The notes under the pieces were generated by a model that saw only the letters and a list, made by a program, of their open reading frames with translations, made no database searches and was not told where the DNA came from. Below, in pieces: positions 2,721 through 27,421 of a stretch of DNA of 64,000 nucleotides. Made by a program: the position numbers and the translations under genes. The stretch comes from Macrostomum lignano. Its lineage: Eukaryota. The stretch is taken from assembly GCA_002269645.1 (NCBI GenBank), contig NIVC01000591.1, positions 496,001 through 560,000 of the forward strand. Direction: 5' to 3'. How positions within the stretch are numbered: position 1 is the stretch's first letter; each line of letters opens with the position of its first letter.

Positions 2721-5700
2721 CTAAATTGAACAGTTTTGGTTAAATCGTCAATCTTAACCTTTCAGTGCAGTATAAGACACCCCAGTAAAACAAAATGCAT
2801 AGACCTACTTGAAAAGACTTGATGAATGTCCACAGCAGAGTTCGCAAGTGTTCTCCTCTATTTAGCAGCTTGACAAGACGCATCGCTCGAAACAGACGGA
2901 AGAAGTTTATTGATATTGTTGTTTTTCCGGCCTGTAGTGACAAAGAAAAGAAATCGAATCAATTAGTTGAAGCAGTTTCATGTCCTAAATAGTTTGCTTT
3001 AATCCGGTGCAAAACTTTTCTTTCAAAATTTGTATAAGTAGACCGCTCGCGCCATCGATGAAAAAAATCAAGCAATTAATGATGAAGCATGAATTATTTG
3101 TACATAATAAAAGCAGGGTAATGCTACATCAAAGTTACGTGCTACATTGCCAAACAAAAATGCTGAAAAAATATTTCAGTACAAGCTTAACAGCAAACTA
3201 TCGTAATTGCATTTTAGGTAGGTCAATTTTTTGACTCAATCGAATAAAATTTATTTCCAGCTGATCTTGGTTTCCACTACAGGGCAATCATTTTATGCAC
3301 CTTTCTGACGCTCGGTTATATCGGAAGGACAAGAAAAAACTATCGTATCGCACTCATAATTTATCGTAGAGTATGCTTATATGTTGTTCAAACTTTTATA
3401 CCTTATGTCGCTCTATAAAGCTTTTTATGTACATTTTTATGCACTTCTATATTAATGTTTATATAACCAGCACCAGTTTTTATTCAAATACTAAACAATG
3501 AACTTTACGATACTACATTTGGGATTTGTTAGCAGGGTGTAATAACACGGCAAAGCGATAAGCGTACTATAATAAAAGCGAGCCATACAAGCTAACAAAA
3601 AGAGAATGAAACTGTGATTAATTTAGATTTTTCTACACAAATTTGTAGAATTAGGTGGCTGTAGCTCGTACGAGGTAAAAAAATCTTTGTTAGTATGTTA
3701 TATTTAATTGAAAACTACTTGAAGTTATAATTTATGCATCAGCTACATAATACGCTTTTCACAAAAGTACATTGCGTAGAAAACGAATAAACCACAACTT
3801 TTAGTAAGTTTGTTAAGTTTCTTAAAACTTCACTTTCATTGAAGAAAGTCAATCAAAACTAAATTCGGCACAGTGTTAACAAGATTTTTCATTATATCTG
3901 CCTTTTAAATAGCTAATTTATTTGCAAAACTCTACAGCTACCGACAATCCCGTAAGCGTTGGTAGTTGATAGTTTCACGTACGGCAATCCGACGTTCCCG
4001 ACACTCATCTACGTCTCTGACGAAGAGCGGTATGTACTTTTACATTACATCGACGGATGACAACGTCATACGTCGGCTGAACGTCAGTGCAATGTAAAAG
4101 TACATATTTTTCATCGACCTCGATAGACTTTGGGAAGGTCGGATTGCTGTACGTGAAACTTGAATGGTAACAAAAAATTTAGAGATGTTTAAATATTTTG
4201 CATGGACAAAATGACCTACTTAGCAAATATATTATTAGTGTAAGCAACAATAAAATCAAGCAAAAACACAAGCTATTTGTCGTTAGTCTTATAGTAAACA
4301 AATCGAGAAAATTGAAACGGCGCGCGACTTGAAGTTTTCACATACGTGTCGCGAAATGATATTGTGCTGAGAGTCGTGTGGCAGTGTGGTCTTTAATGCA
4401 AGGAGGCATTAAAAAAGTTAAATGAATCGAATTGTTTTGCGGCAAGTCACTTAATACATAATAAATAAATTCGAAGCATTTTTAACTGAGACATAAAGCT
4501 AAATTGCTTTGATACTCATAGCCAAAAAAGTAAATTGTTGAGGTGCAAAAAATGACAAAAAATGACTAAGTTTTCTAGCTAGTGCTGATTATCGCTTAAT
4601 TTATCAATATTTGATGTGAATGTGCAGCGTATTGACCAACATTTTAATTGACACTGTCAACTAGCAACTACCTATTAACTATCAAATTCGCGGTAGTTTA
4701 TGACAATATAAGTACGTACTTCTAATGTAAAAAATATTCTTAACATGCAGAGAAATACAAAAGTTAAAATCAACATAGATTATAATTAATTCTTTCTATT
4801 TCTACCGACGCGTTTCGGACCAACAATGGCCATCTTCAGGGTCTGGTGTATTTTTAACTCACACAACAACTTTATAAGTGAACAAATGTTAACTGTACAG
4901 TCCAAAGGGCATGTCATGGGCAGAATTTTCCAAAAATGTTAAGCATAGATTGCAAGTACATTGTTCAGACTTGTGCCTTTACTTAGAATACCTTGAGCAA
5001 ATGGCCCGCACCACTATGGGAGAGCTGAATATTCAGATTAGGTTTTTGGTCTTTAATGTACATGGATTCAAGTATGTTGAGCCTAAAATCAGTTCTACAC
5101 CGATCAATAATTTTAAACTGCTGAGTTTGCTCAATTTCGCAACAACTGTTGCAACAGAGCAGGTGGTCTTGGATAGCCGACCTTTTCAACCAATGCTCTC
5201 TGACTCTGGTGTACAGGTGCCTTTTAGTTTTACCTATATAGGTAATGTTCTGGTCAACAGAACAAGAGAACTTATACACAACACCTGCCGCCAGAGCAAG
5301 AGGAACATGGGATTTCAGTCTACTAACGTATTGGCCGACCTTAGCAGTGCGGAAAACAATCTTAATAGGCGTGTTAAAGAATTTACGGAAGCTTTTCTCA
5401 ATTTTCTTCTTCAACAGGTTAGAGCAGTTGCCATAGAAAGGCAAGACCATTGTCGGGCAAGTTTTTAACACATCCTTATCAGAAGCAAAACTCGGTTTGT
5501 TCGTCATTTTATTAGAGATGAATCTATTGATTTCACTACAAATGACATTCTTGGGAAATTGATTCATTCTCAGAATTTTGGTGAGATTGTTAACTTCAAT
5601 GTTGAAATTGGTCCAAGAGCTGCAAACCGTGTAGGCCCTATGCAACAAACAACGAATCAGGCCAACTTTCCACTGTCTGGGACACACAGCTCCAAAATTA

Positions 5701-8700
5701 AGCATCAAGTTCGTGAAAGTGGGCTTGCGGTAAACTTTAGTGGAAACTGAATTACTGTGGATGTCAACGTCAACATCAAGGAAAGGGAGTTTCTTGTCAC
5801 CAACTTCAACCGTGAACTGGATGTTTTTGTGAGTGGAGTTCAGAGCAGCAAGAAACTCTTCATGATCCGATCCCCCTTTGAAAATGGCAAAGGTGTCATC
5901 AACGTAGCGCTTGTAGAATCTAGGAGCACATTGCAGGGTCATCCACTCTTTCTCCCAATGAGTCATACAAATGTTGGCAAGAGTGGGCGCAAGGGGGCTA
6001 CCCATCGCGCAGCCATCGGTTTGGCGGTAGTACTTATCATTAAAAAGGAACAGACCAGAGGTGGCAAAGTTCATAAGTTTTTTGAAAGTACTTTTTGGGA
6101 ATTTTGGAGGGACATGCTCATAGACATAGTCAGCGGCCAGATCAATAGCAAACTGCAGAGGAACATTTTTGGAAAATTCTGCCCATGACATGCCCTTTGG
6201 ACTGTACAGTTAACATTTGTTCACTTATAAAGTTGTTGTGTGAGTTAAAAATACACCAGACCCTGAAGATGGCCATTGTTGGTCCGAAACGCGTCGGTAG
6301 AAATAGAAAGAATTAATTATAATCTATGTTGATTTTAACTTTTGTATTTCTCTGCCTGCTAAAGCGTGCTACCTTACCTCAATTTTATTTTGAAATTCTT
6401 CACATGGCCTACACATATAAAACAGCTGTTATTCTCAAATGAGCGTTACACAGGGCACGAACATCTTTTGATCTCAAACAGTTATACCAACTAAGTTGTC
6501 TGTTCTAGGTATGCTTATAATAAAAGTAACTATACTTGGATTAAGTGATTTCAAAAACGAACAAATACTCTATGACTAGAAAGTTTCTATGAATAACAAA
6601 GACTGAATAGCAAGGGTAGCTCTAAGCTAAAAAGAACCTAGCTATTAGTCGACATAGGACCTCTTATTGTGAAAACTTGAATACTGGACAACAGTTTTTC
6701 GTTATAGTTTCGAACACTACAAGCGTAAAACTACAGGACATGGACATGTACATACCGTGAGCTTTCCCGTGATGATATCGATGTACGAACCGAGCACGAT
6801 GATGAAGTCAAATACGTTCCATACGTCGCTGAAGTAGTTCTGAAATGCCATATTTGCTTTTGCTTTTCAATTGACTCTTAATCTATAAAATTTCTCAGTA
6901 ACCAGTATCCAAAGACTCACTCTAAAGCTGAAAGCAATCAGTTTCAGCACAAACTCGATGGTAAATATGGCCGTAAATATCATGTTGAGATAGTCCAACG
7001 CTAAGCTGTACGCGTCTGGTTGACCTTCAAACTAAAATATATGAATGTAGGAAAAAAATTACGAGCACCTGTTTGATAGCAAGGTATATTTGTTCGATAA
7101 CTACATACGAGCTATTTTTCTCACCTTCATAGCTAATGCGATAGTATTGAGCATGATAAGCACGAATATTCCGTATTCAAACGGTGTTGAAGTGACGAAC
7201 CACCAGATTTTATAGCGGAACTTCCGCTGCGGTATATATCTCCTGACTGGTTTCGCTTTCAGGGCGAATTCGATGCATTTTCTCTGGGAAAAGTAGAGAA
7301 TATTGGGATAATTGCAAACAAAAAAAGTCTTTTGGTGATATTTTTGCGCGTACATTTTTTCAACCCAAAATCTTCATATATGTAAAACTGTCTGTATTTA
7401 TCGCTCTTATAAAAATTCAGCGCCTTTATTTTATGTTGACTTCACTTTTCTTGTATAACAAATCGTTACTGTATGTCGATCTGAATTATCATTAATTATT
7501 GTCTCGCGTATTCATCTTGATAGATCTCAGAGCATCTACTCGTATGTACGAGCGTACTATAAGTTATGCAAGGACTAATTAAGTAGAAGGATGCCACTCT
7601 CGAAATCAATGACAATTTTGAAGGCATGCTTGCTTGCATTGCAGCTAAAATTTAAAGGCCTCTGGCTCCGGATCAGTTGCAGTTAAAAGGATAATTCTTT
7701 AGCCAGATTGTTCGAAATTTTGTTCTCTTAACATGATGCAATGTTTGACCCTATATCTGCATTTGAGTAAAAGCTACATCGAATATTTCATTGCAGTCAA
7801 AATGAATAATATATAGATTACTCCAAACGTCCTTGATACTATGTAAGTAAAAGATTTTGTGTGAAAAAAAGAAAGATTTTGTATGACAATCCGTCATCCG
7901 GCTCGCAACTTACCTGATTTTTATCCAGCTCGCAGTTCTTGTACTCCTGCTCGCCTTCCTGTTGAAATGTAACAATCACAAAGCCGACAAAAATGTTAAC
8001 CATGAAGAAGGCTATAATGATGATGAATACTATGTAAAATATTGCTACTGGTGGCCGGTTGTTGTAAATGCCGCTCATACTCTCTCCAGCGGAGTCAATT
8101 GATCGATACAGCAGCCTGTGTTGGAGCGGTAGGTAAAAAAACTTATTATGAAAAAAACTAGACAAAATTATCCAAGCTGAAGTCTCTAAGCTAATGAAAA
8201 TTTTGGAAGCTAACGTCGCCCCCAGCCACTCACTTTGGCCAGCCTTCGAACGTAGCCACAGCGAACAAGGACAGCAAAGCATTTGGCACGTTGTCGAAAT
8301 TCAAATCATTGTTAGTCCAAGTTCTGACGCTGTACTCCGGACTGCGAACATCGTTGTTCTTGTAGTAGATAAAGTAGCCCTGGCAATCGGCTTCCACCAT
8401 TTTGGACGGATCGTTGCAGTATTGAAATTTGCCCTTGAACAGTTGGACTCCAATTACGGAGAACATGAATTCGAGAAGAAATGTGACTAGCATGATGTTT
8501 CCAATGCTCTTCACGGCGACAATGACGCACTGGACTACGTGCTGAATGTTTTATATAGCGGAATCAATTGAAAGAGCTGCAGAGTTTTTACTATTACAAA
8601 TAAAGTACATAAAAGATGTATAGTTGTGCCCAAACTACATGTCTGAAAGCACTCTGGACCTTTAAGACCGTAAGCACGTAGAGTCTTAGATATCTCACAT

Positions 8701-11700
8701 GGTAAAAAATTGCACATTCAGTTTAACAAAATTAATTAAGTTTAAAGCGAAGATTTCAACACGTCAAATATTGAAGTCATTTTGACTAAACTTAAACTAA
8801 GCATCAGTACCAGTGTTTCGCAGTCCCTGATAATATTAACAAGTGTCATATATCAAAACATTTCTAATTTCGCTAGCTGGGCGCTACTATGACACGACTC
8901 TAAGTTTCCAGAAAAGCAATTCTTTTTTCGAGTTCTTCACCTTAAGTCCTTTGGCTCGATTAATCGCCCGCAGTGGCCGTAGAACCCTCAGAACTCTAAG
9001 AATCTTCACCACCGAGAACGTGTCGTTTCTGCAGGAGTGAGCAAAAAACAATGACTACCTTTGTATATTAAGAAACATTAGTATGAAAAATAAAGAATAG
9101 CGATTCGATCATTGTTAATAAAAAATACAAACATGCATTTATTTAGGACGAAGCACAGAAAAAGACACAAACCGATGAACCAAAAGTAAATTTTGGTAGA
9201 AAAGAGCTATTTAAACACCCTTAGGCACTTTGAAAGGCAGCAATTTTCGAATAGGTGCATAGCTTCCGATGTTAGCCAAAAAAACTATGAGAAAGCTTTA
9301 ACCTGAGCTCTCCATCAAAAGGTAAATTGGGGCCTACCCGCCAAAAGGTGAATCAGCTCTGAAATTACAAATGGTGTGTCGCTTTGGAGTTCCGTATTTC
9401 TTAGAAAAAGATCTGACTCAAAAATGTTATAATTGATGACAATACGAGCTATATGTAGCTACCAGACAATAGTCATGACATACGGGCGTATATAATCCGT
9501 TTTGACATCTAACTTTTTGTATAGCTAAAACAAAATTAAAAAAAACTACTGAAGCTTTTTAGTTTATTAATGAGTAAATAACCAGAAAATGTATTTCATT
9601 TTTCTAATAAGAATTCGCTTTTGAGCTGGTCTAGATAAGAAATCAATAGGCTGCAAAATACAATAAAAATTAAATCTGAACTAAAGCTGAGCACACAAAT
9701 CTGTCACTCACTCCATAAAGAATGACACCAGTGCTATGACAACTACAAGCAAGTCCAAAAGATTGAATGTGGACCTGCAGTAGGAACCTTTGTGCATAAC
9801 TGCTCCGTAGGCAATCACCTGTGGTGATTTTTTAAATAAAATAAATGTAAATGCAGTAAAACAAACAAAATTGAGGCTATACAGCATCAAAGTAAACATT
9901 CTATCGATTCGCCTTTAATAATTAATGACAGAGTGCTTTTGTGATGTGGTAACAAAAGGTTAGGAGGAGTGCAAAATTACGGAGAATTAGAGACGTGTGG
10001 ATTACAAAACGACATGACAGACACTTAAATGTTTAAAGTAATTGCGCCATATTAGGCGAGGAATTTAACAATGATTGTGTGCGCCTAATTTCACCCTGGT
10101 TAATAATAGCTGATGCCTAATTTGTTGGTTTGCTTTATCAAAACTAAACTGTTCTGTCAAAAATGAATACATTTCAGAAACTCTGACGACAAAACTCTGA
10201 CGTCTTGGCATCCTAGGTTCTGCAGTTAGATTTGGTATATATTCATACAACCATTGATTCAAAATATTTTATACGTAGCTCGTGGACTAATTAAACTTAG
10301 GAAGATTGTAAGATTTTTTTAGATTTTGTAGTCCCTGCCGTTTCTAATTTTGCTTGCACCATATCTTCTATGCATGCAATTTGCGTTTGTAAACTTGGAG
10401 AAGTGCAGGTGGTACAGTTCTGATTACCAAACAGAAAGAAGAAATCAACCACAAAGCAAGCGACACAGAGTTGGTGAGAGATTTAAACAAAAGTAAGCAC
10501 AAGGATTACGGGTGGTGCAGGTGAGGAATCGATATTTCAATAAATGTTAACCCAATTCCAAGCATAATGAATACTTCAGACTGGGAAACGTACTCTAAAC
10601 AGAATGAGATGATGCTGGTGAATACTACCAGCATGTCCAGCAGGTTAAACGCCTGTCTGCAGAAAGCACCGCGGTGAAAAATAACGCCGTAAGCGGTCAC
10701 CTAAAATCGAAATATTTACGTTTTATTTCTGGTAGAAACTTTCTATTCCTTAAGCTAAAAGATTCTACACCGTCTGCACAGGCAAAATTGGTTAGCGTGA
10801 GAATTCAAGTTAATAAACGAAAACACTGCCTACCTTGAGTAGAATTTCCACGGTAAATACGCTGGTGAAAAATAAGTCGAACTTGTTCAGAATCTGCAAT
10901 TGATCGGTTCTTGATTTAAACCAACAGTGACGATAACAAAAGTCATGGGCTTTTCAGATTTATTAAATTCTTTTCTTTGGTTAAAGAGCGCCCATTGGAT
11001 GATAAGCTCTAAGCTAAGATTGTGGACAGTGATCTTGCGAAAAGTTCCTGAGCACGTACTAACAAAAGTGCTGCATCAATAGAAAAAGGAACTGAGTTAT
11101 CGAACAGAAGAATCGGGCTGGTACACACAGATAATAAATATTCGAAATTTTGAATGGGATTCGCCCAGCACGTCCTGTCATGTCACTTTTCGAAACTTCA
11201 CAAATCACGTGGTCAAGCTAGAAAGCGAGCCTCACCTTATTTCGATTGTTCTGAGAATTAACTGGCTCCTCAGCGGCAAGCATGGCCGAGCTGACCATGA
11301 TGCAGGCGAGCACGACGCTGCCAAAATAGGAGTGATTGCAAATCTTGTGACATAGAACGCGAAAGCTGTTAGTGCTGCTCAAGATGAAAAAGGATGACGC
11401 CTCGGGGATTGGTTGCACTTTCTGCTTCATGTGCAACTCGGACATCCGTCGAGGTCGTGCTGAGGTCACGGGAACGTCTTCGGCGTCAGAGGTTTCGTCG
11501 TCAGTGTTCGGCTTACTCTCCGAGTCTGGAATTCGGATAATGAGGTGGATAATGATATTCGGATAATGATAACGAACTCCGAGCGTTCTTTGCATTTTGA
11601 GCATATGAAAAAATGTTCTAATTAGATTGTACTGGTACTCAGCACCAATGGTGCTTCTGATATACCTGGGCCTTAAAATTCTTGTTGTGTACCCTTGTTG

Positions 11701-14700
11701 TGTACTGTCGCTTGATTCAACAGCAGGAGAAGTAACTTTGTCAATTTTAACAAGCAGACGAACCAATAGATGCACAATTAAAAAGACGTAAAAGCATCGT
11801 GTGCAGTAGGAACAGTAAGAGCAAATGTTTTTTAAGTCAATCCGGACACAACACTTACCAGCTATAAAGACTTTCGGTTCGCCGACTCGGCCAATTTCCT
11901 CGAGCTTGTCGATGGCTCCAGGACCACCGCCGACAGACGTCGAGCCCACGCCGCCGGAGTTCGCGCCAGAGCCGGAGACAGCGGCGCCGGCTTTCTTGTC
12001 GCATTCGTCGCTGGCGTCTTTTTTCGCGTCCGACGTATTGTCCACGTCCGCTAAGTTGTCCACAGCAATGGCCAGAAACACGTTTAACAGGATGTAGTTG
12101 CCGCAGATGAATAAGATGACAAAATAGAAGCTGACTAGAACTCTAGTGGCGTCCTTGGAGATCAAAATGTTTTTTTTTATTTTTTGAAGGTTTGATAGAA
12201 ATTTATGCGCTGTGTCATTCTCGAACGTTACACGTACATGTACAGGTTCTAACCTTTTGATCCCCGGTCTTATGATCTGCACTGTTATGCTTCCAGTTTT
12301 ACGAGAAAAATTTCTATTCATACGATCCCCACTCCTATGATGCCACTTTCCTAATCCCTTGCTCTTCTGATTCCCACCCTCATGATATCCAATCCCATGA
12401 TCCCCAATCTCGTGATCTTCAATCCCATGATCTCAAATCCCACGGTCTCTAATCCCATAATCCATAATTCCATATCCCATATCCCATGATCTCCAATCCC
12501 ATAATCTCCAATCCCACGGTCTCCAATCAAATAATCCATAATGCTCCACACTTTTATGATTCCCAATATTCTGATCTTAATTCAGTGGTCTGGTTATTTG
12601 TGATTTGAAATTTATTATTGATATGATCCTCGCCCTTATCATTTGATACGAACTTTTATATTCAGTGAAGCGTAAAAGGAATCTTATTATTAAGTGAGGA
12701 TTGCTTGCTTCTGGGTTTGTTTACTATTGGGGGGAATGCTTCTTATTTTTGTGGAGGCTTTCTTTCGTGGCGTACGCAGAAAAGTTTTTTATAAGCAGAA
12801 AATTGCAGCAAAAAATATCTACAGACAACTCATTTTTAGTATATAGAAAGGTGACTTTCCTTGACAATTTTACTCGAATAATGTGATTTATGAAACTGGA
12901 AAAGCAATACTTTTAAGAAAAATGTGATTTTGTTTTAATGAATTCACATGCATGGATAATTTTCGTCCCTGGCTTATTGGCCGCCCCGAAGGGGACATTA
13001 GATTGCTAGTCTGATACTAATTTTTATTAAACCGAATTCGAGTTCTATTAAGTCTCACAGCTCCTGCATCAAGGACACCTAAATTTAAATACCTAATGAT
13101 ATTAAACATTTTATAAATATTATTTTGAAAATCCGTACATTAAGACCACCGCTGCTGTTGATTCCGTCGTACATAACGCTGTTCCAATCTTCGCCAGTTA
13201 ATATCTGAAAAGAAGCACATTTTCAAGATATCAGATACGAGAACTGAGCAATGTTACTAAAAGTTTAGCACGTATTATTAAACATAGTTTCACCTGAAAG
13301 ACGGTAAGCAACGACTGCCAGAAGCTGTCAAAGTTGCTCCTCGGCTTGTGCGTTTCAAAATTAAATTTGCCGCCAAATAGTTGCATCCCCAGCAGGGCAA
13401 AGATCACAATGAACAGAAACAGTAGCAGCAGCAGGGAGATGATGCTCTTCATTGAGGACAGAAGTGAGGCTACAAGATTTCGCAGCGAGTTCCAGTAGCG
13501 AGTTACTTTGAATACTCGAAGTAGACGAGCGCATCGCAGTACAGAAATGCCGATATTCGGAATAAGGTTGGTCTCCGTGAGTAGCAGCTCCGATATAGAG
13601 GCGACAACGACGAAAAAGTCGAATTTGTTAAACAGAAAACTATAGTAAGTGCGAACTCCGAGCGAGTACATTTTCAAAAGCATCTCGAATGTGAACAGCG
13701 CCACGAATACATAGTTGGCCTTGTTTTGAAAGTCCTCGAGCCACAGTGGCTGATTGTAGAACTGGCTGGCCAGCACGCCAGTGTTGAGAAACACCAGCAG
13801 GATGATGATCCAGTAGGCTGCCTGCGACTTCACGCATCGGCGACAGGAGCGTCGGCTGCGACGGTTCCACTTGCGGAAGCCGCGACTGATCAGATTAAAT
13901 AGTTAGACGATGGTACTATTTATCAGGGTTATTGATACCCCATAATTGGATATTCATTGTGTTAATTGACATTTTACTCATTATCTTAGAGACAATTTAC
14001 AAAGTCAATTAGAAATTATCACTATGCAAAAATAAAGCAAAACGTTTGCACTAAAATTGTCCTCTGCTGCCCTGCTGCCTGCCGCCTGCTAACAATACAG
14101 AACTGCATGGCTTTCGAGCTCATTAACGCGTTAATCTTTGAATTTTATAAACTGTTTTAAGTGTTTTAAGTTTACTGAAAAAGTTTAATCAATCAATTCT
14201 GCTGCATTATGTGAGCCCATTATGCTACAGTATTCGTTAGTTAGTACGGAATTAAATAAGCCTTTGCCGTAGACATCCTCTACCGACAATACGAGCTCAT
14301 ACGAGCGTAATCCATTTGAAACAATCCATGTAACATGCCCGAGAATAAATTTGGATGTTCCTGGGGACTCTTCCCCAAGGTGCGCGCATTGTAAGTAGAT
14401 AGATATAGTCATTTAAAATGTTGATCTTACCTGTTCCGCTGCCACCAGCTCGGCTCTACGGCTGACTCCATCTCGCCCTCGCTTTTGGCCATAGAGTCAA
14501 ACTCAGCAATGGCATTCTCTGTGGGTTTGGACATCGCGTAGAGACCGTCGGTTCAGATTGGTTAATGAAAAATCCAGGAGAAATCAAAAGAAAAATTACT
14601 TCCTGCAAAGATGAAAGATAAGTTACAACAAAATGTTTTGGTGAGATTAGCTCGTACTGGTCAAAGAAAAGCAAACTTATGAAAAACTCTGGCAATTTTT

Positions 14701-17700: not shown

Positions 17701-20700
17701 TTTACATGTTTTAGCAGACCATTATTTTGTGTCTCGGCTTTTTTTAGATGATGATGAATATAAAGTTTCTGAAGAGAAAGGGACAACTAGGGCGTACATG
17801 TATCTGTTGCGTCAGTACTGTAAATATTCTTGGATTTCAAATTTTCCGTTAAAGAAGAAAACCAACTTAAATCAACCCCTGAAGCCTAAAATATTAATTC
17901 AAAGAGCCCTTTGAAATAATCTAATTGAAGAGATAAAAATATCAGTTTTCTTCATTACCAATAATTTACGCAAACTGTTTGCAAAGCATCAGCTTTCTAA
18001 AAACAGAATTTTAAAAGCAGAGGAAGTTAATTGTGCAAAATTATGCTAAGACAAGACATAGTTCAGCTTTGTTCAAAATTTGTTTGAAATGTGTTTCTAG
18101 CAGTTTTCTTCAAACTAGTCTTGCAATTTTCGTTTGAGCAGACTTAGCAAGCGATTCTGCGATGCCTTGAATAGTTGGCATGTGCTGATAAATTTTTGTT
18201 TTGTCAGTGCCGATCGAGTGTGATCAGCTTCTGTGCCAGACAGAAGGCAAAGGTTGCTTAAATGCATGTCTAAGAGCAGCTGACTAAATATTCTGTAAGA
18301 CTACAATGAAAGCAGCTTTAGCATAACTAAAAGGTATTCTTAATGGTTGAAGAGATTCTCATATTTGTGAAAGCTAACAATATTTGATAGCAAAGACAAT
18401 TAATAAAAATTTAACTGGTGTTTGATAGGATTTCCAAAATTTTCCAGCCAAATTCGTACCAGAGGGAATTATGGGCGAATTTTGACCTAAAATGATTTGG
18501 CGATAAATAATTTTCAATCTTGATCAAAGCACTGGTTATTACAGTAAAAAAAATTAAGTTAATCAGAGAAAGATTCTGATTTATTGGGTATTATTAGAAA
18601 ATAAATAATAATAGCTTTGAAAATATTTGCGAAAAGATTTTTTGTTTAACTCACTTCTGACTTCTTCTTCTTCCTCCTCACCCTCGTCGTCGGAGAGATC
18701 CTCTGAAATTGGGATCGCACTTTGATTTTTAAAGAGTTCATTATAACAGCCTGGCCAACGGTCCCCAGCTCTCTCAATCTCTCTCAAGCCCTCAAAACCA
18801 AACGAGACTCACTAATTAAAAGAACCGGAAAGTCAAAAAGCCTCGTGAAGATGCTTTGTGTCAAAGGAAATGCTGGGCATGCGCGGGCCCACAGGGAACA
18901 CCTTGCACTGCTAATAAGCCTGCATGAAACGAACCTTCATTGTCAAGCTCATCATTAAATTCTCGCAAGATTTTAACAAATCTGTGGTTTAATTAGCTTA
19001 CAGAGTTTAATGAAAACAAAAACATCTTTTAGATTTCACATCCGACTATCGAAATCTATCTTTTCAATTATTATCTATAGACCTTCCCTGCCTTTGGAGC
19101 GTCGTTGAATCATATATATTTCACTAATTTGCTGCAGCAAGAAAAAGTGCCAATTTGATTCGCTTTGCAAAGATCAGTTACTACAATGACAATATCGAAT
19201 GGCAAGATTAAATAGTAAAGCGACCCCGTTAGACGTCGGAAACATATCGGCCGACGTCGAATTGATGTACGGGAAATTTCATGAATAACTTAATAAACGA
19301 GTTGATTTTTAATGTTTGTTCCTAATTATCCCCGAAGAAGGCACTAGGACGGACAAGCACTTTTTCTACCATTCCTTGTGATGATTTCTTACCTGCGGTT
19401 AGAATCCACTCCATATAGCCGTTATAATCCTCCTCAAACTTCATTCGCTCCCTCTGCTTGTGAAATTTGCCCTTCTTCTTGGCTTTCTCCCGCTCCTTGG
19501 AGAATTCTCTGCGGGTTGCGTGAAAATAAAAAAATAGAAAATATGCCGGCGACCTTGAGCTTTAACAAGGGAAATGTTTAGAAGCGGCATTAATATGCAG
19601 CTGTTTGGACATTTGTCTCTTCTCACAAACTCTTGAGTAATGATGATTACAGGGACAGCTAAAGTCTTCGAAATGATCTGGAGGCCAATGTAAGGAATGC
19701 ATACTTGTCTTATACAACAAATATACGCTCCTTAACCGCATCCAGGTCATTTTTTTAGTAAAACCAAGTTTAGCGTCTGTCTACTTCAGCTGTCCATGAA
19801 TGAGGGGTCTACAAGCTTATCGCATCGTTCAATGCAGGTTCTTTTCACCAGCTCTAAACTTGACATCATCAAGTCAGAAAGTCTTATATCGCTTTAGCTG
19901 GTGGCGTATCGAGTTAGTGAACGCCTCCAAGAAGGTTCATCTGCATTTATTCTAAGTATCGTTTTTATAGCCACTACATGCAAAGTTTCTTTGTTAGGGT
20001 ATTTTCAAACCGCTCATGTTTCATGCAGATTATCAATGCTTGAAAGTTTGTAGTTGCTAATTTATGTGCAGCGTTGAACCTTTTCATAATCGCATTTATG
20101 GGATTTAGGAAAAATTGGAGAAATTTCCTGTTATGAAAAACTATATTGCACTCAGGGAACCAGCGATTAGAAAGTGCTGTCGATTTTATGCTGGATGGAA
20201 CAGCTATTCAGTATGAAATTTGCGGTTCATTGAGTTTCGTTGCGGGAATTTTTCTTTCAGAAAGTTTAACTTAAAATATTATTGTATAATTTGACGTCAA
20301 AAAACAACGTATTATTTTTTCTGTCTGTTCTTTGTAGTCTAATTGTAGTCATGTTATGATAAAATTTAAATGAATCGATACATCTGCGATTTCATCAATG
20401 ACAATGGGTCCATTTTTTCTGTCAAATCGGTCCGTTCTGGTTATTTTTGAACGGTAAGGTCGCTGTCGCATTCTTATACTTTGCGTAACTTTGATCTGAG
20501 CTCGTAGATGTAGAATTATCCATTTGCCAGCGACGTCCATCGAATTCGAAAACGCGCAATTTGGGGATATTGAACGGGCTTCAACTTAGTGTTTAATGAT
20601 GCTCACCCGCTCAGCACTCCGAGAACCAGATTGAGAACAAAGAATGATCCAAGAATAATAAGGCTGACAAAGTACAGCCAGGCGAATTCTGGTCCAGTGC

Positions 20701-23700
20701 TGTCCGTGACATAGTACATCACGTCAGTCCAGCCCTCCATGGTGATGCACTGGAACACTGTCAGCATAGCCAGGCCGATATTATCGAAGTTGGTGATGCC
20801 CGAGTTCGGCCCGGGCCAGCGCTCAGTGATGCCCGGTTTTGGTCGCCAGTCTTTGTCCATGGGATTCGCATCGAAGCACGTCCAGTTTTCGTCGGACTTT
20901 GCCTCGGGATAGTCGACGCCCATGCAGCCCCAGCCTTTCAAATCGTCCGGATGGCGACTGTCGCAAGGACGGGGCTCGTTGCTAATCATCCCTAGGGATT
21001 TTAAGTGTTTTTAACTTTTTAGTAGTTTTTTATTTTAATTTGAAAATTTATTTTCGAGACAGAATATCTGAACAGGCACAACCGAAGTACGTGCACTTGG
21101 ATGACGTGTCCAGTTTCACTTATTGCTTCGTGGGTGTAAGTCAGGATTATTTAGAGATTTAGTGATTTAATCATCATTATTTTACTGTACGGTCAGCCCT
21201 AGGGGGCATCAAACGTACTGCAATACTTTGATAGCCTGTATGGGGTGTGGTCCCCCTCGACCCCTGGCTACATGCGCCTCAATTTTTAAGTTTGAAGCTC
21301 GCTTGAAGCTTTAAAATTCCATTGATTTAAGGGAATCCGCAGGTAACAGAATGGGGGACTTTGTAGGACAGACAATCCGAACAGAGAAGAGGCCAGTGCA
21401 ACTTGAAGCAGAAATGCAATATCCCTTGATGACATGCAGTACACTGTGGATCTACCTGCAATTCTACCCCCACCCCCCAGGGGGAAGCGCATATTTAGGC
21501 AGAAGAAGGAGAAGAAGAGAAGAGAATCGATGAAGAGCACGAGACTACCTGCAGTCATTGCGGTGTTTCCCTACTGCTCAGCGGCCAGATTGGCTGCAGG
21601 GACTCAATGCGATGAGGGCTCAATTCGCTACACAGCCAAATCGGGCAAGTGCGGAAGCGAGCCGGTCATGCAGGGGTGAGCAGGGAAGGAAGACTTGTGT
21701 TTCTAGCTCATTACTGCAGAGAGATTGAGAAAGAAGCGAGAGAGCACAATATGCATCTGGACGCAAATCAGAGAGGCGAGTAGCGTGTGAGACTGCGGCT
21801 CTGCAAAAGCAGTGAGAGTTTGTGCATGCCTTTACTAGATAATCTCAGAGCAACTCATCCATCTGGGACGGTGCCTGAGGCTGTTGTGGACGACTTGAGT
21901 AAGATTAAGGGTGCCTATACACTGCAAGCTAGAGCCCGCAGATTTATGAGTACTGCCAGATAGGTATTCGGGTTTCATCGCTGATAACTAGAAATTGACT
22001 TATTGCTGTGTGATAGCAGATAAGGGCCTGATTCATTTGGATAAAGGAAGTAATTTTTCGAAAAGAAACGTAGCAAGATATGATGCATATTTTACAACAA
22101 AGAGTTTTTGTTTGCTTGGCCAAATCATCTTTCTGTCTCGTGCATGAAACGTAAACTAAGAGCGTAGGCTGTTCTTGATAGAGTTCTGTTGGTCATTGTA
22201 TTGATAATTTCACCTAAACACTGGGTCATTATTCCACAATTACTCCAAAATATAAATTTACCCAATATACAAATTCCATCACGTGACTGCTTTCTACACC
22301 TTTATTTTCAATTCATCCCACCTTATCTTATCTTTGCTTAGGCGTAAAATAACTTTGGCATAGTGGTAGATTAATTAGTGTGTAGCTGAGTTAAATAATG
22401 GCCAAATATGAAGAGCTAAAACGCTGAAATGATGCCATTATTCTACACTTACTTCGGGCTAATGCAAAAATAAGGAACTTTGTACATGGGTTAATCAATG
22501 TACATTGGGGAGCAACTGTGGATTAATGGCTAACACTATTGTTTCTGAGTGAAAGTATATATACAATGACATGTAGTTTCTTTTGATTTGTTTTAATTAG
22601 ACCCTGACAATGCCCGCGCCAAAACTACGACTTTGAAAGTTCAAAGACGACTGAATTAATCTATATTTATTTAAGTAATCTAATCTAAGAAGTAATCTAC
22701 TTAAGTAGTCTTTGTGAAAACTCGGCACTCACAGAAGCCGGTGTTGTGGTCCTGTCGGTAGCAGGCACCGTGCAGTTTACCGGAGAACATCTCAAGACCA
22801 ATTATGGCATAGATGAGTATAACAAAGATTACTAGCAGAGCAATATGCAGTAAAGGTAGCATCGCTCGCATGATTGAGTTGAGCACAACTTGTAGGCTTG
22901 GCAAGCCGGACACAAGCCTGAGAGGTCGCAATACTCGAAACGCTCTCAGCGCTTTGATGTCAAGAGACTTTGGCAGCAAGCTCTGCAGAGCAATGCTGAA
23001 CAGTCCCATTACAACGATGATAAAGTCTAATACGTTCCAGAAGTTTCTCAGATAAGCGTTTGGGTCCATGACGAAGCCCTGGGCGATGATTTTCAGGCAG
23101 CACTCCAGCGTAAATATGCCAGTGAAGACCAGCTCCAGCTTTTCCTGCAAACATTGCAGGGAGAAAGTGGTTTAAAAGAGTTTCAAAATTCTGATGCCAA
23201 CAATTTGCCGATGTATTTGTCTATAGTCTGACTTTTTTAAGTTAGCTATTAGGTTAAGACATTGAAGAAAACTTTTTAAGCTAAGAATTTTGGCTTAGCA
23301 TATTTTGCTTTTTGTTAATTGATATTAAATCTTGTTCAGAAGTGACGCTTTTTTTGTCAAACAGCGTTGCTTTATAACACAAAATCAAATTTTAACATAG
23401 GCTTCTTCCCTCTTCCTCTTGACATTTTCTAGATAATATGTAGCTTTATATAGATTTGGGAAATCTCATTTTAAATGTAGCATGACTGACTAAGTGCTTT
23501 ACAGAAAATTCTCTGACTCCCCTAAAAGCACTGACGCGACGGTGCATCGAACGTCAGTCCAGTCTCCAAAGACGAAATAAGCACTTAACACTCACCAAAA
23601 ATAGATTGGCATCGTTTGAGTCGAGCTCCGGGTAGGGTTTTGTAGCGGCCAGGGCCACGCAGTTGGCGAAGATTGTCAGCAAGATGATTATTTCGAACGG

Positions 23701-26700
23701 CCTGATGAAAATGTGTTTCGAGTTTGATAGCATTAGCTGACGCTACAAGTGCATCAATACGCTCGCACATTCGGGTATCGTATTAAAGAACGTTTCGATT
23801 ATTTCAGACGAATTTTATTGACCCATAGCAAAAGATATTTTTTGCTTCCTGTGAATGACAGTCGCTTATTGTGAATAGGGTAGTTTGTTGTTAATAGAGT
23901 AGCTTGTTGTGAATCGAGTAATTTGTTAATAGAGTAGTTTGTTGTGAATAGAGTAGTTTGTTGTGAATAGAGTAGTTTGTTGTGAATAGAGTAGTTTGTT
24001 GTGAATAGAGTAGTTTGTTGTGAATAGAGTAGTTTGTTGTGAATTGAGTAGTTTGTTGTGAATAGAGTAGTTTGTTGTGAATTGAGTAGTTTGTTGTGAA
24101 TAGAGTAGTTTGTTGTGAATTGAGTAGCTTGTTATTAGAGTAGTTTGTTGTTAATAGAGTAGCTTGTTGTGAATCGAGTAATTTGTTAATAGAGTAGTTT
24201 GTTGTGAATAGAGTAGTTTGTTGTGAATAGAGTAGTTTGTTGTGAATAGAGTAGTTTGTTGTGAATAGAGTAGTTTGTTGTGAATAGAGTAGTTTGTTGT
24301 GAATAGAGTAGTTTGTTGTGAATTGAGTAGCTTGTTATTAGAGTAGTTTGTTGTTAATAGAGTAGCTTGTTGTGAATTGAGTAGTTTGTTAATAGAGTAG
24401 TTTGTTGTTAATAGAGTAGTTTGTTGTGAATAGAGTAGTTTGTTGTGAATAGAGTAGTTTGTTGTGAATTGAGTAGCTTTTTGTGAATTGAGTAGCTTGT
24501 TAATAGAGTAGTTTGTTGTGAATTGAGTAGTTTGTTGTGAATAGAGTAGTTTGTTGTGAATTGAGTAGTTTGTTGTGAATAGAGTAGCTTGTTATTAGAG
24601 TAGTTTGTTGTTAATAGAGTAGTTTGTTGTGAATTGAGTAGTTTGTTGTGAATAGAGTAGTTTGTTGTGAATTGAGTAGCTTGTTATTAGAGTAGTTTGT
24701 TGTTAATAGAGTAGCTTGTTGTGAATCGAGTAATTTGTTAATAGAGTAGTTTGTTGTGAATAGAGTAGTTTGTTGTGAATAGAGTAGTTTGTTGTGAATA
24801 GAGTAGTTTGTTGTGAATAGAGTAGTTTGTTGTGAATAGAGTAGTTTGTTGTGAATAGAGTAGTTTGTTGTGAATAGAGTAGTTTGTTGTGAATTGAGTA
24901 GCTTGTTATTAGAGTAGTTTGTTGTTAATAGAGTAGCTTGTTGTGAATTGAGTAGTTTGTTAATAGAGTAGTTTGTTGTTAATAGAGTAGTTTGTTGTGA
25001 ATAGAGTAGTTTGTTGTGAATAGAGTAGTTTGTTGTGAATTGAGTAGCTTTTTGTGAATTGAGTAGCTTGTTAATAGAGTAGTTTGTTGTGAATTGAGTA
25101 GTTTGTTGTGAATAGAGTAGTTTGTTGTGAATTGAGTAGTTTGTTGTGAATAGAGTAGCTTGTTAATAGAGTAGTTTGTTGTTAATAGAGTAGTTTGTTG
25201 TGAATTGAGTAGTTTGTTGTGAATAGAGTAGCTTGTTGTGAATGGAGTAGTTTGTTGTGAATTGAGTAGTTTGTTGTGAATTGAGTAGCTTGTTGTGAAT
25301 TGAGTAGTTTGTTAATAGAGTAGTTTGTTGTTAATAGAGTAGTTTGTTGTGAATAGAGTAGTTTGTTGTGAATTGAGTAGCTTTTTGTGAATTGAGTAGC
25401 TTGTTAATAGAGTAGTTTGTTGTGAATTGAGTAGTTTGTTGTGAATAGAGTAGTTTGTTGTGAATTGAGTAGTTTGTTGTGAATAGAGTAGCTTGTTAAT
25501 AGAGTAGTTTGTTGTGAATTGAGTAGTTTGTTGTTATTAGTGTAATTTGTTGTTTTTAGAGTAGCTTGTTGGGTTTTGAAGTATTTTCTTCGAAAATTTT
25601 GCCAGTATCCTAAGGCGCTGATTAATAACCCTCTGGGCTGAGCTGACAAGGTATTGAGGTTCTAAGCTATTTTAAATTACCAATATGTTCTGTAGATTCT
25701 GATGAGAGCGGGAATAGGAATAGAAATAATTTATCATCATGAAAATATCCCTCTTAGGTACTGACTTTCCCTAACCCCTGCCAAAGCCAGGTAATCCAGA
25801 TATACTAGACCCGGCAGATGGGAGATCAAACCAATGCACTTTGAGTTTTATATAAACGGCTGGATTTCTCGCGATGTTCGGCTGAGTTTTGACCTCAAAC
25901 TATCGTTCGGAATATCACGCGATGGGATATAAAATATTATTGCACTGCATATGTAGTACTTCCCCAGTCAAGAATTAGTGGGATTGTACCAGCCAGATCA
26001 TCTAAGGTTACCTTCTGCTTCATTCGTACATTGTCTACAGGACGTTTGCTTGATTAATTAACGAAAATATATTTATTAAATAATGCTGGAACGATGACTG
26101 GGGTGATTCAGGATTGGGATTCTGTAGGAGAATAAGTTGAATACATTCGGTGAGAGAATGGAAAATTCTATAATATAGAAGTCTAGGATTCGGTGAAGGA
26201 GACTGGACTCTGGATAAAGGAAACTGGGACTCTCGATGAAGGAGACTGGGACTCTAGATAAAGGAAACTGGGACTCTCGATGAAGGAGACTGGGACTCTC
26301 GATGAAGGAGACTGGGACTCTCGATGAAGGAGACTGGGACTCTCGATGAAGGAGACTGGGACTATCGATGAAGGAGACTGAGACTCTCGATGAAGGAGAC
26401 TGGGACTCTCGATGAAGGAGACTGGGACTCTCGATGAAGGAGACTGGGACTCTCGATGAAGGAGACTGGGACTATCGATGAAGGAGACTGAGACTCTCGA
26501 TGAAGGAGACTGAGACTCTCGATGAAGGAGACTGGGACTATCGATGAAGGAGACTGAGACTCTCGATGAAGGAGACTGGGACTATCGATGAAGGAGACTG
26601 AGAATCTCGATGAAGAAACGGGTTTGATGAAGGAGTCTGGGATTTGATGAAGGAGACTGAGACTCTCGATGAAGGAGACTGGGACTCTTGATGAAGGAGA

Positions 26701-27421
26701 CTGGGACTCTCGATGTAGGAGACTGGGACTCTCGATGAAGGAGACTGAGACTCTCGATGAAGGAGACTGGGACTCTCGATGAAGGAGACTGAGACTCTCG
26801 ATGAAGGAAACTGGGACTCTCAATGAGGGAGACTGGGACTCTCAATGAGGGAGACTGGGACTCTCAATGAAAGAGACTGGGACTCTCGATGAAGGAGACT
26901 GGAACTCTGGATGAAGAAGACTGGGGCTCGATAAAGGAGTCTGGAGTTTGATGAAGCAGATTGGGACTTTCATCGAGAAGAAATCTGTTCAAAACAGGCA
27001 GGACTCACTTTCTGTCCACCAGTTTGATAATCAACTTCCTGATGGGGTTGTTGATTGACAGGCAGAACAGCACTCGGTTCGGCCGCTTGTCCCTCGGTTC
27101 AGAGCGCGCCCGCCTGGCGGCCTGGCTCTGCGCCAGCATGGCGGACATGGCCACGGACATGAGGTCACTGTGGCCGGTGCCGAGGCCGCTGGGTTCAGCA
27201 CTGAAGGCGGTTACCCTCGGTGTTGGGTTGATGTGCACCTGTCTGCCCGGCTGCTGCTGCGGCAGCTGTTGCGACAACAACGCTGAAGTAGACGGATGCT
27301 GAGCTGCATCGTTGGATGAAGTTTGCAAATTTGCCGGGCATGCCGCTGCTGTGGAGAAACTGGCGGGTGCTGACGGCGGCTGCGGCTGCGGCTGCTGAGG
27401 GTTCTCAATGTTTTCTTCCAT
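2513..27421 (-). CDS. CACNA1 (Cav1): L-type voltage-gated calcium channel alpha1 subunit (Cav1), multi-exon, 3' end outside window
   Basis: Exons: 27009-27421, 23596-23701, 22733-23144, 20607-20991, 19393-19508, 18655-18702, 15410-15514, 14431-14518, 13294-13885, 13139-13204, 11859-12153, 11236-11525, 10834-10893, [10594-10700 or 9712-9818], 8941-9028, 8234-8541, 7914-8115, 7125-7283, 6921-7031, 6756-6839, 2809-2931, 2513-2720. All GT-AG with phases consistent end to end. Pore motifs TMEGW/TGEDW/TFEGW/TGEAW; four R/K-rich S4s. Cav1-type segments [13 protein letters not shown] and [26 protein letters not shown]. Confidence 0.96.
2809..2931 (-). CDS. CACNA1 (Cav1): Cav1 exon 21 (IVS4)
   Basis: [41 protein letters not shown]. 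Confidence 0.94.
3971..4160. mobile_element. MITE-like / fold-back element
   Basis: 30-bp terminal inverted repeats with 27/30 match (3971-4000 vs 4131-4160); inner 16/16 inverted repeat (4031-4046 vs 4091-4106); central hairpin; no TSD found. Confidence 0.65.
4804..4842 (-). ncRNA. Minimal type I hammerhead ribozyme motif (PLE 3' pLTR)
   Basis: ACC-CUGAAGA-U-GGCCA-UUGU-UGGUC-C-GAAA-CGC-GUC/GGU: core boxes, 3-bp stem I ACC/GGU, 5-bp stem II, palindromic ACGCGU stem III, GUC triplet. Confidence 0.8.
4983..6191 (-). CDS. Truncated PLE RT + GIY-YIG ORF (first 10 aa come from the inverted arm)
   Basis: Uninterrupted 402 aa. It begins at NVP of the RT motif DVxSLFTNVP, so the first catalytic Asp is missing. 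Confidence 0.85.
   Translation of the reverse strand: MSWAEFSKNVPLQFAIDLAADYVYEHVPPKFPKSTFKKLMNFATSGLFLFNDKYYRQTDGCAMGSPLAPTLANICMTHWEKEWMTLQCAPRFYKRYVDDTFAIFKGGSDHEEFLAALNSTHKNIQFTVEVGDKKLPFLDVDVDIHSNSVSTKVYRKPTFTNLMLNFGAVCPRQWKVGLIRCLLHRAYTVCSSWTNFNIEVNNLTKILRMNQFPKNVICSEINRFISNKMTNKPSFASDKDVLKTCPTMVLPFYGNCSNLLKKKIEKSFRKFFNTPIKIVFRTAKVGQYVSRLKSHVPLALAAGVVYKFSCSVDQNITYIGKTKRHLYTRVREHWLKRSAIQDHLLCCNSCCEIEQTQQFKIIDRCRTDFRLNILESMYIKDQKPNLNIQLSHSGAGHLLKVF
6260..6298 (+). ncRNA. Second copy of the hammerhead motif in the inverted arm
   Basis: Same sequence on the plus strand: acc ctgaaga tggccattgttggtcc gaaac gcgtc ggt. Confidence 0.8.
6756..6839 (-). CDS. CACNA1 (Cav1): Cav1 exon 20 (IVS3, 84 nt)
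   Basis: [28 protein letters not shown]. Confidence 0.94.
6921..7031 (-). CDS. CACNA1 (Cav1): Cav1 exon 19 (IVS2)
   Basis: [37 protein letters not shown]. Confidence 0.94.
7125..7283 (-). CDS. CACNA1 (Cav1): Cav1 exon 18 (III-IV linker, IVS1)
   Basis: [18 protein letters not shown]...LNTIALAMK. Confidence 0.95.
7914..8115 (-). CDS. CACNA1 (Cav1): Cav1 exon 17 (IIIS6)
   Basis: LLYRSIDS...[33 protein letters not shown]. Confidence 0.95.
8234..8541 (-). CDS. CACNA1 (Cav1): Cav1 exon 16 (IIIS5, pore III)
   Basis: [27 protein letters not shown]...ATFEGWP. Confidence 0.95.
8941..9028 (-). CDS. CACNA1 (Cav1): Cav1 exon 15 (IIIS4)
   Basis: [29 protein letters not shown]. Confidence 0.95.
9712..9818 (-). 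CDS. CACNA1 (Cav1): Cav1 exon 14b (paralog of 14a, 107 nt)
   Basis: [35 protein letters not shown](E); CACAG acceptor, GTGAGT donor. Confidence 0.9.
10594..10700 (-). CDS. CACNA1 (Cav1): Cav1 exon 14a (IIIS2-S3 linker + IIIS3, 107 nt)
   Basis: [35 protein letters not shown](E); TTTTAG acceptor, GTACGT donor. Confidence 0.9.
10834..10893 (-). CDS. CACNA1 (Cav1): Cav1 exon 13 (IIIS2, 60 nt)
   Basis: [20 protein letters not shown]. Confidence 0.93.
11236..11525 (-). CDS. CACNA1 (Cav1): Cav1 exon 12 (II-III loop, IIIS1)
   Basis: DSESKPNT...RPRRMSEL...[19 protein letters not shown]. Confidence 0.9.
11859..12153 (-). CDS. CACNA1 (Cav1): Cav1 exon 11 (IIS6, II-III loop)
   Basis: [35 protein letters not shown]...; donor G|GTAAGT. 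Confidence 0.9.
12323..12575. repeat. Degenerate minisatellite (atcccatgatc-like)
   Basis: Recurrent aatcccat/gatct motifs. Confidence 0.6.
13139..13204 (-). CDS. CACNA1 (Cav1): Cav1 exon 10 (domain II pore)
   Basis: [22 protein letters not shown]. Confidence 0.92.
13294..13885 (-). CDS. CACNA1 (Cav1): Cav1 exon 9 (IIS1-IIS5)
   Basis: [28 protein letters not shown]...[16 protein letters not shown]...QSLLTVFQ. Confidence 0.96.
14431..14518 (-). CDS. CACNA1 (Cav1): Cav1 exon 8 (I-II loop)
   Basis: [28 protein letters not shown]; GTAAGA donor; phase 1-2 joins exon 9. Confidence 0.8.
15410..15514 (-). CDS. CACNA1 (Cav1): Cav1 exon 7 (I-II loop, 105 nt)
   Basis: (T)[34 protein letters not shown]; GC-rich island, pyrimidine tract+AAG acceptor, GTGAGC donor, phase 1-1. 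Confidence 0.7.
17385..17605 (-). mobile_element. tRNA-derived SINE with CORE/MIR-like domain (older copy)
   Basis: Degenerate A box, B box GGCTCGATTC, GTGTACTTGGGCAAGAC...CCAGCTGTAAAATGGGTA; aligns by eye with the copy at 49022-49272. Confidence 0.7.
18655..18702 (-). CDS. CACNA1 (Cav1): Cav1 exon 6 (acidic I-II loop, 48 nt)
   Basis: (E)[15 protein letters not shown]; TTTCAG acceptor, GTGAGT donor, phase 1-1. Confidence 0.75.
19393..19508 (-). CDS. CACNA1 (Cav1): Cav1 exon 5 (I-II loop, AID)
   Basis: [38 protein letters not shown]. Confidence 0.93.
20607..20991 (-). CDS. CACNA1 (Cav1): Cav1 exon 4 (domain I pore, IS6)
   Basis: [33 protein letters not shown]...NLVLGVLSG. Confidence 0.96.
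22733..23144 (-). CDS. CACNA1 (Cav1): Cav1 exon 3 (IS2-IS5)
   Basis: [11 protein letters not shown]...[17 protein letters not shown]...GKLHGAC. Confidence 0.96.
23596..23701 (-). CDS. CACNA1 (Cav1): Cav1 exon 2 (IS1)
   Basis: (K)[35 protein letters not shown]; not in ORF track in this frame; CAG acceptor, GTGAGT donor. Confidence 0.93.
23872..25560. repeat. 19-bp minisatellite GTGAATAGAGTAGTTTGTT
   Basis: Direct reading. Confidence 0.97.
26195..26960. repeat. 22-bp minisatellite GATGAAGGAGACTGGGACTCTC
   Basis: Direct reading; 22-aa ORF periodicity. Confidence 0.96.
27009..27421 (-). CDS. CACNA1 (Cav1): Cav1 exon 1 (N-terminus to pre-IS1)
   Basis: ATG in strong Kozak-like context GCCGTCGCCATGG; [26 protein letters not shown]; donor AA|GTGAGT phase 2. 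Confidence 0.88.

Follow-up and report, generated by a model that had tools for sequence, protein, structure and literature searches.

A tandem pair of exons for the S3 helix of repeat III, very probably used in a mutually exclusive manner, in an L-type calcium channel gene of Macrostomum lignano

A 64-kb window of the genome of the flatworm Macrostomum lignano (contig NIVC01000591.1) was found to carry a gene for the alpha-1 subunit of a Cav1 (L-type) calcium channel in which a single exon, encoding the linker between S2 and S3 of repeat III together with the S3 helix itself (IIIS3), is present in two tandem copies. We consider it likely that these copies, designated exons 14a and 14b, arose by tandem duplication and are used in a mutually exclusive manner in this gene, which is Cav1 paralog 1 of M. 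lignano. The reading frame tolerates one copy per messenger RNA, and both copies are kept in each of the three Cav1 paralogs of this species. Here, the window is the whole stretch of 64,000 nucleotides (nt) that was analyzed, and coordinates given without the name of a locus are positions within it.

Anatomy of the exon pair

A sequence-only reading of the window, made without database searches, had proposed two 107-nt exons of the same phase, with canonical splice sites and 19 of 36 residues identical, lying 775 nt apart. The coordinates and translations bear this out, and the pair and its neighbors are arranged as follows, in the order of transcription.

10834-10893, minus strand: IIIS2 exon, single and constitutive, 5' of the pair (60 nt, phase 0 to 0, 20 amino acids)
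10594-10700, minus strand: exon 14a, first copy in the transcript (107 nt, phase 0 to 2; IIIS2-S3 linker and IIIS3)
9819-10593, minus strand: intron between 14a and 14b (775 nt)
9712-9818, minus strand: exon 14b, second copy in the transcript (107 nt, phase 0 to 2)
8941-9028, minus strand: IIIS4 exon, single and constitutive, 3' of the pair (88 nt; one base of the split codon and 29 amino acids)

With the exon boundary marked by a slash, the splice sites of exon 14a read ttttag/G (acceptor) and GA/gtacgt (donor), and those of exon 14b read caccacag/G and GA/gtgagtg. Each copy consists of 35 full codons followed by GA, and the split Glu codon is completed by the first base of the IIIS4 exon, which is in frame after 14a and 14b alike. 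At the amino acid level the two copies agree in 18 of the 35 full codons and in the common split Glu, so that 17 of the 36 residues differ; at the nucleotide level they are 62% identical. This likeness is well beyond chance, with an E-value of 4.6e-12 when one exon peptide was searched against the whole 64-kb window by tblastn. In a gap-free alignment with rabbit Cav1.1, for which a structure has been solved, the exon corresponds to residues 851-886 of repeat III, that is, to the S2-S3 linker and S3. No tandem duplicates of other exons of the channel gene were found in the window by tblastn. The regions encoding IIIS2, IVS3, and IS6 are each single, and the earlier proposal that the IIIS2 and IVS3 exons have no second copy there thus stands.

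The host gene is an L-type channel

The exon pair lies within a gene that occupies much of the left half of the window and continues beyond its first position, with the 3' part (IVS6 to the C-terminus) extending past the window start.

2505-27445, minus strand: host gene, M. lignano Cav1 (L-type) alpha-1, paralog 1, from exon 1 to the exon for IVS5 and the pore

Repeats I to IV were recovered from the minus strand, the last of them up to its pore loop, and the pore motifs TMEGW, TGEDW, TFEGW, and TGEAW place a Glu in each loop (EEEE). A rough gene model of 1377 amino acids matched four M. lignano clusters named as L-type alpha subunits, the best of which was protein model P0121 with 92% identity, whereas the remaining matches, from many phyla, reached at most about 63%. 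All of the best matches bear L-type, muscle, or type-D alpha-1 names. Among Protein Data Bank (PDB) chains, Cav1.1, Cav1.3, and Cav1.2 scored 454-486 bits, compared with 340-355 bits for Cav2 and 313-326 bits for Cav3. Judged by these matches, the host gene is closest to L-type channels rather than to Cav2 or Cav3. Records of the orthologous proteins list Ion_trans domains, and the orthologous model P0121, which aligned to the exons of the window with 96-100% identity per exon (tblastn), carries the Pfam domains Ca_chan_IQ and GPHH. An AID-like sequence of 14 residues is present in the window, and the C-terminus is encoded outside it.

Comparison with contig NIVC01001194.1 of the Mlig_3_7 assembly (locus L003) gave 97-99% nucleotide identity, and by this measure the window is one copy of M. 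lignano Cav1 paralog 1. Three Cav1 paralogs are present in M. lignano, with approximately 75% amino acid identity among themselves and about 57-63% to the channels of other phyla. The gene differs in layout from vertebrate Cav1 genes in that IS5, the pore loop, and IS6 share one exon and IS2 to IS5 another (20606-20986 and 22740-23144); there is therefore no separate IS6 exon that would match the vertebrate pair 8/8a.

Both exon types are conserved in three paralogs

The pair was located at four loci, which represent all three paralogs and a second copy of the first.

Window, paralog 1, minus strand: a 10594-10700, b 9712-9818; a-b intron 775 nt
L003, paralog 1, second copy: a 25143-25249, b 26032-26138; a-b intron 782 nt
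L002, paralog 2: a 29863-29969, b 30913-31019; a-b intron 943 nt
L001, paralog 3: a 22744-22850, b 24858-24964; a-b intron 2007 nt

At each of the four loci, the exons follow the order IIIS2, a, b, IIIS4, both alternatives are 107 nt long, and AG/GT splice sites are present. Amino acid identity among the a exons was 33/35 between paralogs 1 and 2, 25/35 between paralogs 1 and 3, and 26/35 for the remaining pair; the corresponding values for the b exons were 28/35, 24/35, and 28/35. Comparisons across types gave 18-23 identical residues of 35, compared with 24-33 within a type, and the split between a and b was backed by all nine quartets (9/9) and a bootstrap value of 92%. Since the exon types cluster across paralogs, the duplication of the exon is, by this grouping, older than the triplication of the gene in the Macrostomum lineage.

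Within a type, the proportion of synonymous differences (pS) between paralogs was mostly 0.7-0.8 (range 0.56-0.82), so that synonymous sites are largely saturated, and the proportion of nonsynonymous differences (pN) was 0.06-0.18, with dN/dS at 0.04-0.16 where it could be computed. Comparison of the introns around the pair between paralogs revealed no significant similarity. On the grounds of saturated pS, low pN within types, and unalignable introns, all six exons (a and b in three paralogs) are judged to be under purifying selection. The sequence-only reading had named dN/dS as a check and neutral decay of one copy as grounds for rejection; both exon types proved to be constrained in all three paralogs, with no sign of such decay. 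Over a much shorter interval, the two copies of paralog 1 (window and L003) differ at 39 of 1591 intronic nt and at none of the 214 nt of exons a and b, each exon being identical between the two copies; in the 14a-14b intron the mismatches amount to 4.1%, with 7 gap columns in addition.

Eight positions of the exon (2, 16, 17, 23, 28, 29, 31, and 35) are diagnostic of type in all three paralogs. The a type has T at position 2, where the b type has I or V, and M or I at position 23, where the b type has L. Positions 16 and 17, at the cytoplasmic entry of S3, read QA in a and ST in b. Positions 28-31, in the outer half of S3, read T-S-(I/L)-(I/A) in a and (I/V)-A-L-(V/M) in b. The countercharge Asp of S3 (in NLLD) is constant between a and b, and the flanking helices are unaltered by the swap.

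Reading frame and transcript models

Because the exon length is 3n+2, products that contain both copies or neither are out of frame, and translation of these products confirmed the earlier argument that only one exon can be used per mRNA. In the window, inclusion of both exons brings a stop right at the a/b junction (GA+G, then TGA), and with both omitted, 10 codons of the IIIS4 exon are read before a stop is reached. Across the three paralogs, inclusion of both leads to a stop at the a/b junction or no more than 6 codons past it. Omission of both shifts the frame in all three; in two paralogs translation then ends within the IIIS4 exon, and in L001 the 88-nt exon stays open in the shifted frame.

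The GenBank annotation of the Mlig_3_7 assembly (BOX15 tags) was built on a genome-guided RNA-seq transcriptome in which TransDecoder called the ORFs (PMC5730564), and its models were examined for use of the pair. For paralog 3, models P0249 (1973 amino acids) and P0250 join IIIS2, a, and IIIS4. For paralog 2, model P0244 joins IIIS2 to b, skipping a, and then reads into the next intron and stops. For paralog 1, model P0241 joins IIIS2 to a and likewise reads into the intron and stops. None of these four RNA-derived models contains both exons in full. Each exon type is thus demonstrably spliced with the other skipped, but in different paralogs. The proposal of mutually exclusive use is upheld to the extent that models with a alone or b alone were found and never both in full; what these models display for any one paralog is a single form.

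A longer version of exon 14a, which would add 14 amino acids to the very short IIIS3-S4 linker, appears in the UniProt/WormBase models P0121 and P0243.

10552-10593, minus strand: candidate 42-nt extension of exon 14a, with a weak donor GG/gttaac at 10551/10550

The extension is not conserved in the paralogs and occurs in no RNA-based model; it could be a real minor isoform or an artefact of the gene predictor. Several UniProt models (P0122, P0123, P0124, P0245, P0251, and P0252) fuse parts of both exons. The hybrids of paralogs 2 and 3 join residues 1-26 of exon a to exon b minus its first residue, which would give the channel one and three-quarter S3 segments. We rejected these hybrids as isoforms since their internal junctions lack AG/GT and no RNA-derived model supports them, and we regard them as predictor artefacts, that is, annotation errors caused by the exon pair.

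Weighing the alternatives

Several observations weigh against the reading as a mutually exclusive pair. The RNA-derived models present one form per paralog (a in paralogs 1 and 3, b in paralog 2), and exon b of the window gene occurs in no RNA-derived transcript model. Two of the models, P0241 and P0244, retain the downstream intron and are thus incompletely spliced or misassembled. No conserved intronic pairing or regulatory elements were found among the three paralogs, apart from bases at the splice sites. Finally, the gap-free Cav1 locus of the tapeworm Echinococcus multilocularis (L006) has a single, a-like IIIS3 exon at 14153-14259 and no second copy.

The paralog-specific exon use in the transcript models would fit a subfunctionalization under way, in which the ancestral gene alternated between the exons, paralogs 1 and 3 would now rely essentially on a and paralog 2 on b, and the second form of each would be confined to a minor cell population or a particular condition. 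There is precedent for such an outcome, as one exon of each ancestral pair is left in vertebrate CACNA1S and in CACNA1F (PMC9741552). Both exons are nevertheless still constrained in all three paralogs, which implies that both are still used in each gene, and consensus transcript models from whole animals cannot reveal minor isoforms. We regard this account as possible but doubtful.

Alternatively, the pair might act as a switch of channel dosage or quality, if regulated inclusion or omission of both exons were to produce nonsense transcripts or a truncated protein of two and a half domains and so lower channel output. The immediate stops in both kinds of product are compatible with this, as are the termini of P0241 and P0244 just past the chosen exon and the skipping of the single IIIS3 exon, with a shift of frame, in an annotated Echinococcus model and a Logan transcript. 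An off-switch, however, needs no two coding copies with type-specific residues under strong purifying selection, and a full-length a-only model, P0249, exists. Such a switch is in our view improbable as the reason for the pair.

One exon type per paralog, with no transcript recorded for exon b of the window gene, is also what would be seen if each paralog used one copy constitutively and the other were a decaying pseudo-exon. Yet against a background of saturated synonymous sites and unalignable introns, all six exons keep their 107 nt, an open frame, and AG/GT sites, and within types 24-33 of 35 residues are retained, which neutral sequence could not do. Moreover, the copies that would be unused (b in paralog 1, a in paralog 2, and b in paralog 3) are conserved as well as those that are used. 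Constraint on the six exons in effect excludes a decaying relic; on this comparative evidence the idea is close to refuted, and we hold it to be highly improbable. The same constraint excludes an artefact of assembly or annotation, in which a segment with one exon was collapsed or duplicated and which the sequence-only reading had already doubted; although M. lignano assemblies are highly duplicated and repeat-rich and several UniProt models here are wrong a/b hybrids, the copies are only 62% identical in nucleotide sequence with unique intron sequence between them, and the pair recurs with identical exons in L003 and at two further paralogous loci, leaving this explanation a negligible probability.

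On balance, the exon pair is real and under selection, and its two members are very probably used in a mutually exclusive manner.

Proposed splicing and functional consequences

In the proposed scheme, 14a or 14b alone would be spliced between the IIIS2 and IIIS4 exons of the pre-mRNA, giving two forms of the channel, and a and b would alternate within one gene. With an exon length of 3n+2, only mRNAs that include a single copy would encode a channel; the other splice products would presumably be removed by nonsense-mediated decay. The choice between a and b would probably be made through competing weak splice sites and trans-acting factors, and may be regulated by cell type. The acceptors of the alternative exons are pyrimidine-poor in the three paralogs, with 7-11 pyrimidines in 20 positions compared with 12-16 in 20 at the IIIS4 acceptor. 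An asymmetry of donors is also kept in all three, the a donors being suboptimal (gtacgt, gtacgt, and gtaggt) and the b donors matching the consensus (gtgagtg in each case). Weak, competing sites are what would be expected of a regulated choice.

Other means of exclusion were considered. Steric exclusion between a and b is unlikely because the a-b intron measures 775 to about 2000 nt, and the donors of the pair are not of U12 type. A search of the introns for inverted repeats returned short pairs, different from locus to locus and no more than chance would produce. In the window, 8 bp of the 14b donor match the IIIS4 acceptor; this match was rejected as a pairing element, as approximately 30 of the kind would arise by chance in 2 kb and it is not present in the paralogs. 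Since no conserved intronic pairing elements were detected, control of the Dscam type by docking sites and a selector is without support, although structure without sequence conservation may still exist.

As to function, the exchange of a for b would most likely shift the voltage dependence or the kinetics of sensor III, as the vertebrate IVS3 pair 31/32 and the IIIS3-S4 exons of the insect channel para suggest by analogy.

The IIIS3 exon outside Macrostomum

No doubled IIIS3 was found in the other animal Cav1 proteins retrieved, and the isoforms of a species share one IIIS3 sequence; the insect Cav1 isoforms retrieved likewise have one IIIS3 sequence per species. Among flatworms other than Macrostomum, the Echinococcus locus is the one gap-free locus that was compared. 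At the Paragonimus kellicotti locus one a-like exon is visible, and a gap of 2990 N in the downstream intron could hide another. The Cav1 genes of Opisthorchis and S. mekongi exceed 100 kb, and the Hydatigera contig begins too near the IIIS4 exon to be of use.

A derived motif, (L/F)TSIIS, is common to the a type and to the one IIIS3 exon that Cav1 has in cestodes and trematodes, where the parasites have LTSIIS, and the b type is slightly nearer to other protostomes. Taken together, these features hint at an older duplication followed by loss of b in the parasites, a question that 36 residues cannot settle. That the pair is an old flatworm invention, duplicated before the split of Macrostomorpha and Neodermata, is accordingly put forward only tentatively, as a somewhat unlikely history.

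The single exon of the parasites is itself skipped in some models. In the curated E. multilocularis model and in a Logan transcript-derived protein, IIIS4 follows directly on IIIS2 (L006, 12981-15259) and is read out of frame, and a Schistosoma japonicum model also omits the IIIS3 exon (the models involved are P0254, P0261, and P0265). Either the exon is truly skipped in these parasites, in an unproductive or truncating splice form, or the models need correction.

Other features of the locus

A Penelope-like retroelement occupies part of the intron between the IVS3 and IVS4 exons (4786-6316). It contains a 402-amino acid ORF on the minus strand (4983-6191) with reverse-transcriptase and GIY-YIG nuclease domains and is flanked by inverted copies of one 43-amino acid ORF (4786-4917 and 6185-6316). 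An exact look-up of the intronic reverse-transcriptase ORF gave no match. Because the L003 sequence differs at this site, the element is probably an insertion polymorphism between copies of the locus. In L003, the IIIS4 exon, intact in the window copy, is split by a 1.87-kb insert (26856-28729) that has terminal inverted repeats (GGTTGAATCCAAAAAATGATACAGAA ... TTCTGTATTCATTTTTGGATTCACCC). Model P0242, a UniProt entry from an older assembly, skips the same half of the exon, so the disrupted L003 copy seems real; one recent duplicate of the channel gene may, to judge from this insert, be non-functional.

Introns of the channel gene also contain tandem arrays at 256-2180, 23850-25571, and 26190-26968, with units of 197 bp in 9.8 copies (99% matches), 19 bp in 93 copies, and 22 bp in 36 copies. 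The region from 24 to 55 kb is packed with tetranucleotide and minisatellite arrays, to which a strong GC skew is due. No Rfam family matched the window. On the plus strand at about 54300-58500, ORFs with laminin-type EGF domains (Pfam EGF_laminin), separated by microsatellite arrays between exons, indicate a putative laminin- or netrin-like neighboring gene.

Significance and comparison with known systems

In vertebrate Cav1 channels, much of the opening of the pore is attributed to voltage sensor III. The pair described here adds the S3 helix of this sensor as a new position to the reports on L-type channels. Its eight type-diagnostic residues are direct targets for mutagenesis of the role of S3 in gating, and its inheritance by three paralogs, each of which kept both exons, amounts to a natural experiment that contrasts with CACNA1S and CACNA1F. 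A practical consequence is that the UniProt/WormBase models, which are wrong here through a/b hybrids and intron read-through, should be corrected before they are used in channel phylogeny or in the selection of flatworm drug targets. Should the pair indeed be an old flatworm one, and should the paralogs make different default choices, as they seem to, M. lignano would possess voltage sensor III in six versions and would be a tractable, transgenic model of how exon pairs and gene copies divide channel function. The new position, its retention in three paralogs, and the experimental tractability of M. lignano make the pair of moderate interest to specialists. We found no report of an alternative IIIS3 exon in L-type channels and no studies of Macrostomum calcium channels in the literature, of which not every journal was covered.

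Tandem exon substitution is the main route by which the voltage sensors and pores of four-domain channels have been diversified without new genes, and it has arisen independently many times. The M. lignano pair, very probably mutually exclusive, belongs to this well-known class, and its position is new for L-type channels as far as the literature found extends. Tandem duplicated exon substitutions are strongly enriched in the four-domain channel superfamily, and ten independent events are recorded in human and fly calcium channels, all of them in different exons (PMC9741552). With such events common in the superfamily, the existence of a further pair is unsurprising to the field. None of the events with a stated location in that survey is in IIIS3, and the positions of two Drosophila Ca-alpha1D pairs were not found there (PMC9741552). 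The M. lignano pair shares the principle of tandem exon substitution with 12a/12b of Cav3, 15a/15b and 31a/31b of NALCN, and the pairs of Drosophila cacophony and Ca-alpha1D. The Cav3 and NALCN pairs alter pore loops or selectivity filters, and one of the cacophony pairs alters the beta-subunit binding site.

The closest parallels in kind are the pairs 8/8a (IS6), 21/22 (IIIS2), and 31/32 (IVS3) of CACNA1C and CACNA1D, which also arose by tandem duplication in a Cav1 alpha-1 gene and also supply a transmembrane segment from one member of the pair. Pair 31/32 resembles the flatworm pair further in that an S3 helix of a voltage sensor is changed. Unlike these pairs, the flatworm exon is the one right after the 21/22 position (Cav1.1 residues 851-886), and the IIIS2, IVS3, and IS6 positions are single; the positional equivalent of CACNA1C 21/22 is the single 60-nt IIIS2 exon. 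Orthology to the vertebrate CACNA1C pairs was rejected because of this difference in position. A location one exon downstream of 21/22 points to an independent duplication, as the sequence-only reading had supposed. Vertebrate exons 21 and 22 are 60 nt long (3n). They encode IIIS2, and a variant that includes both is known (PMC5748662), whereas in the flatworm pair, at 3n+2, double inclusion is nonsense.

In the insect sodium channel para, IIIS3-S4 is encoded by the mutually exclusive exons k and l, with four alternatives (27A-D) in Liposcelis (PMC3805903), and cockroach para isoforms differ in gating (PMC9741552). The likeness to the M. lignano pair lies in the alternation of S3 of repeat III in a four-domain voltage-gated channel; the differences are that para is an arthropod sodium channel, that its exon also covers S4, and that its origin is independent. 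Finally, as in CACNA1S and CACNA1F, an exon pair older than the duplication of the gene was inherited by the paralogs (PMC9741552). Unlike those genes, all three M. lignano paralogs have kept both exons, with no dividing up of the pair among them.

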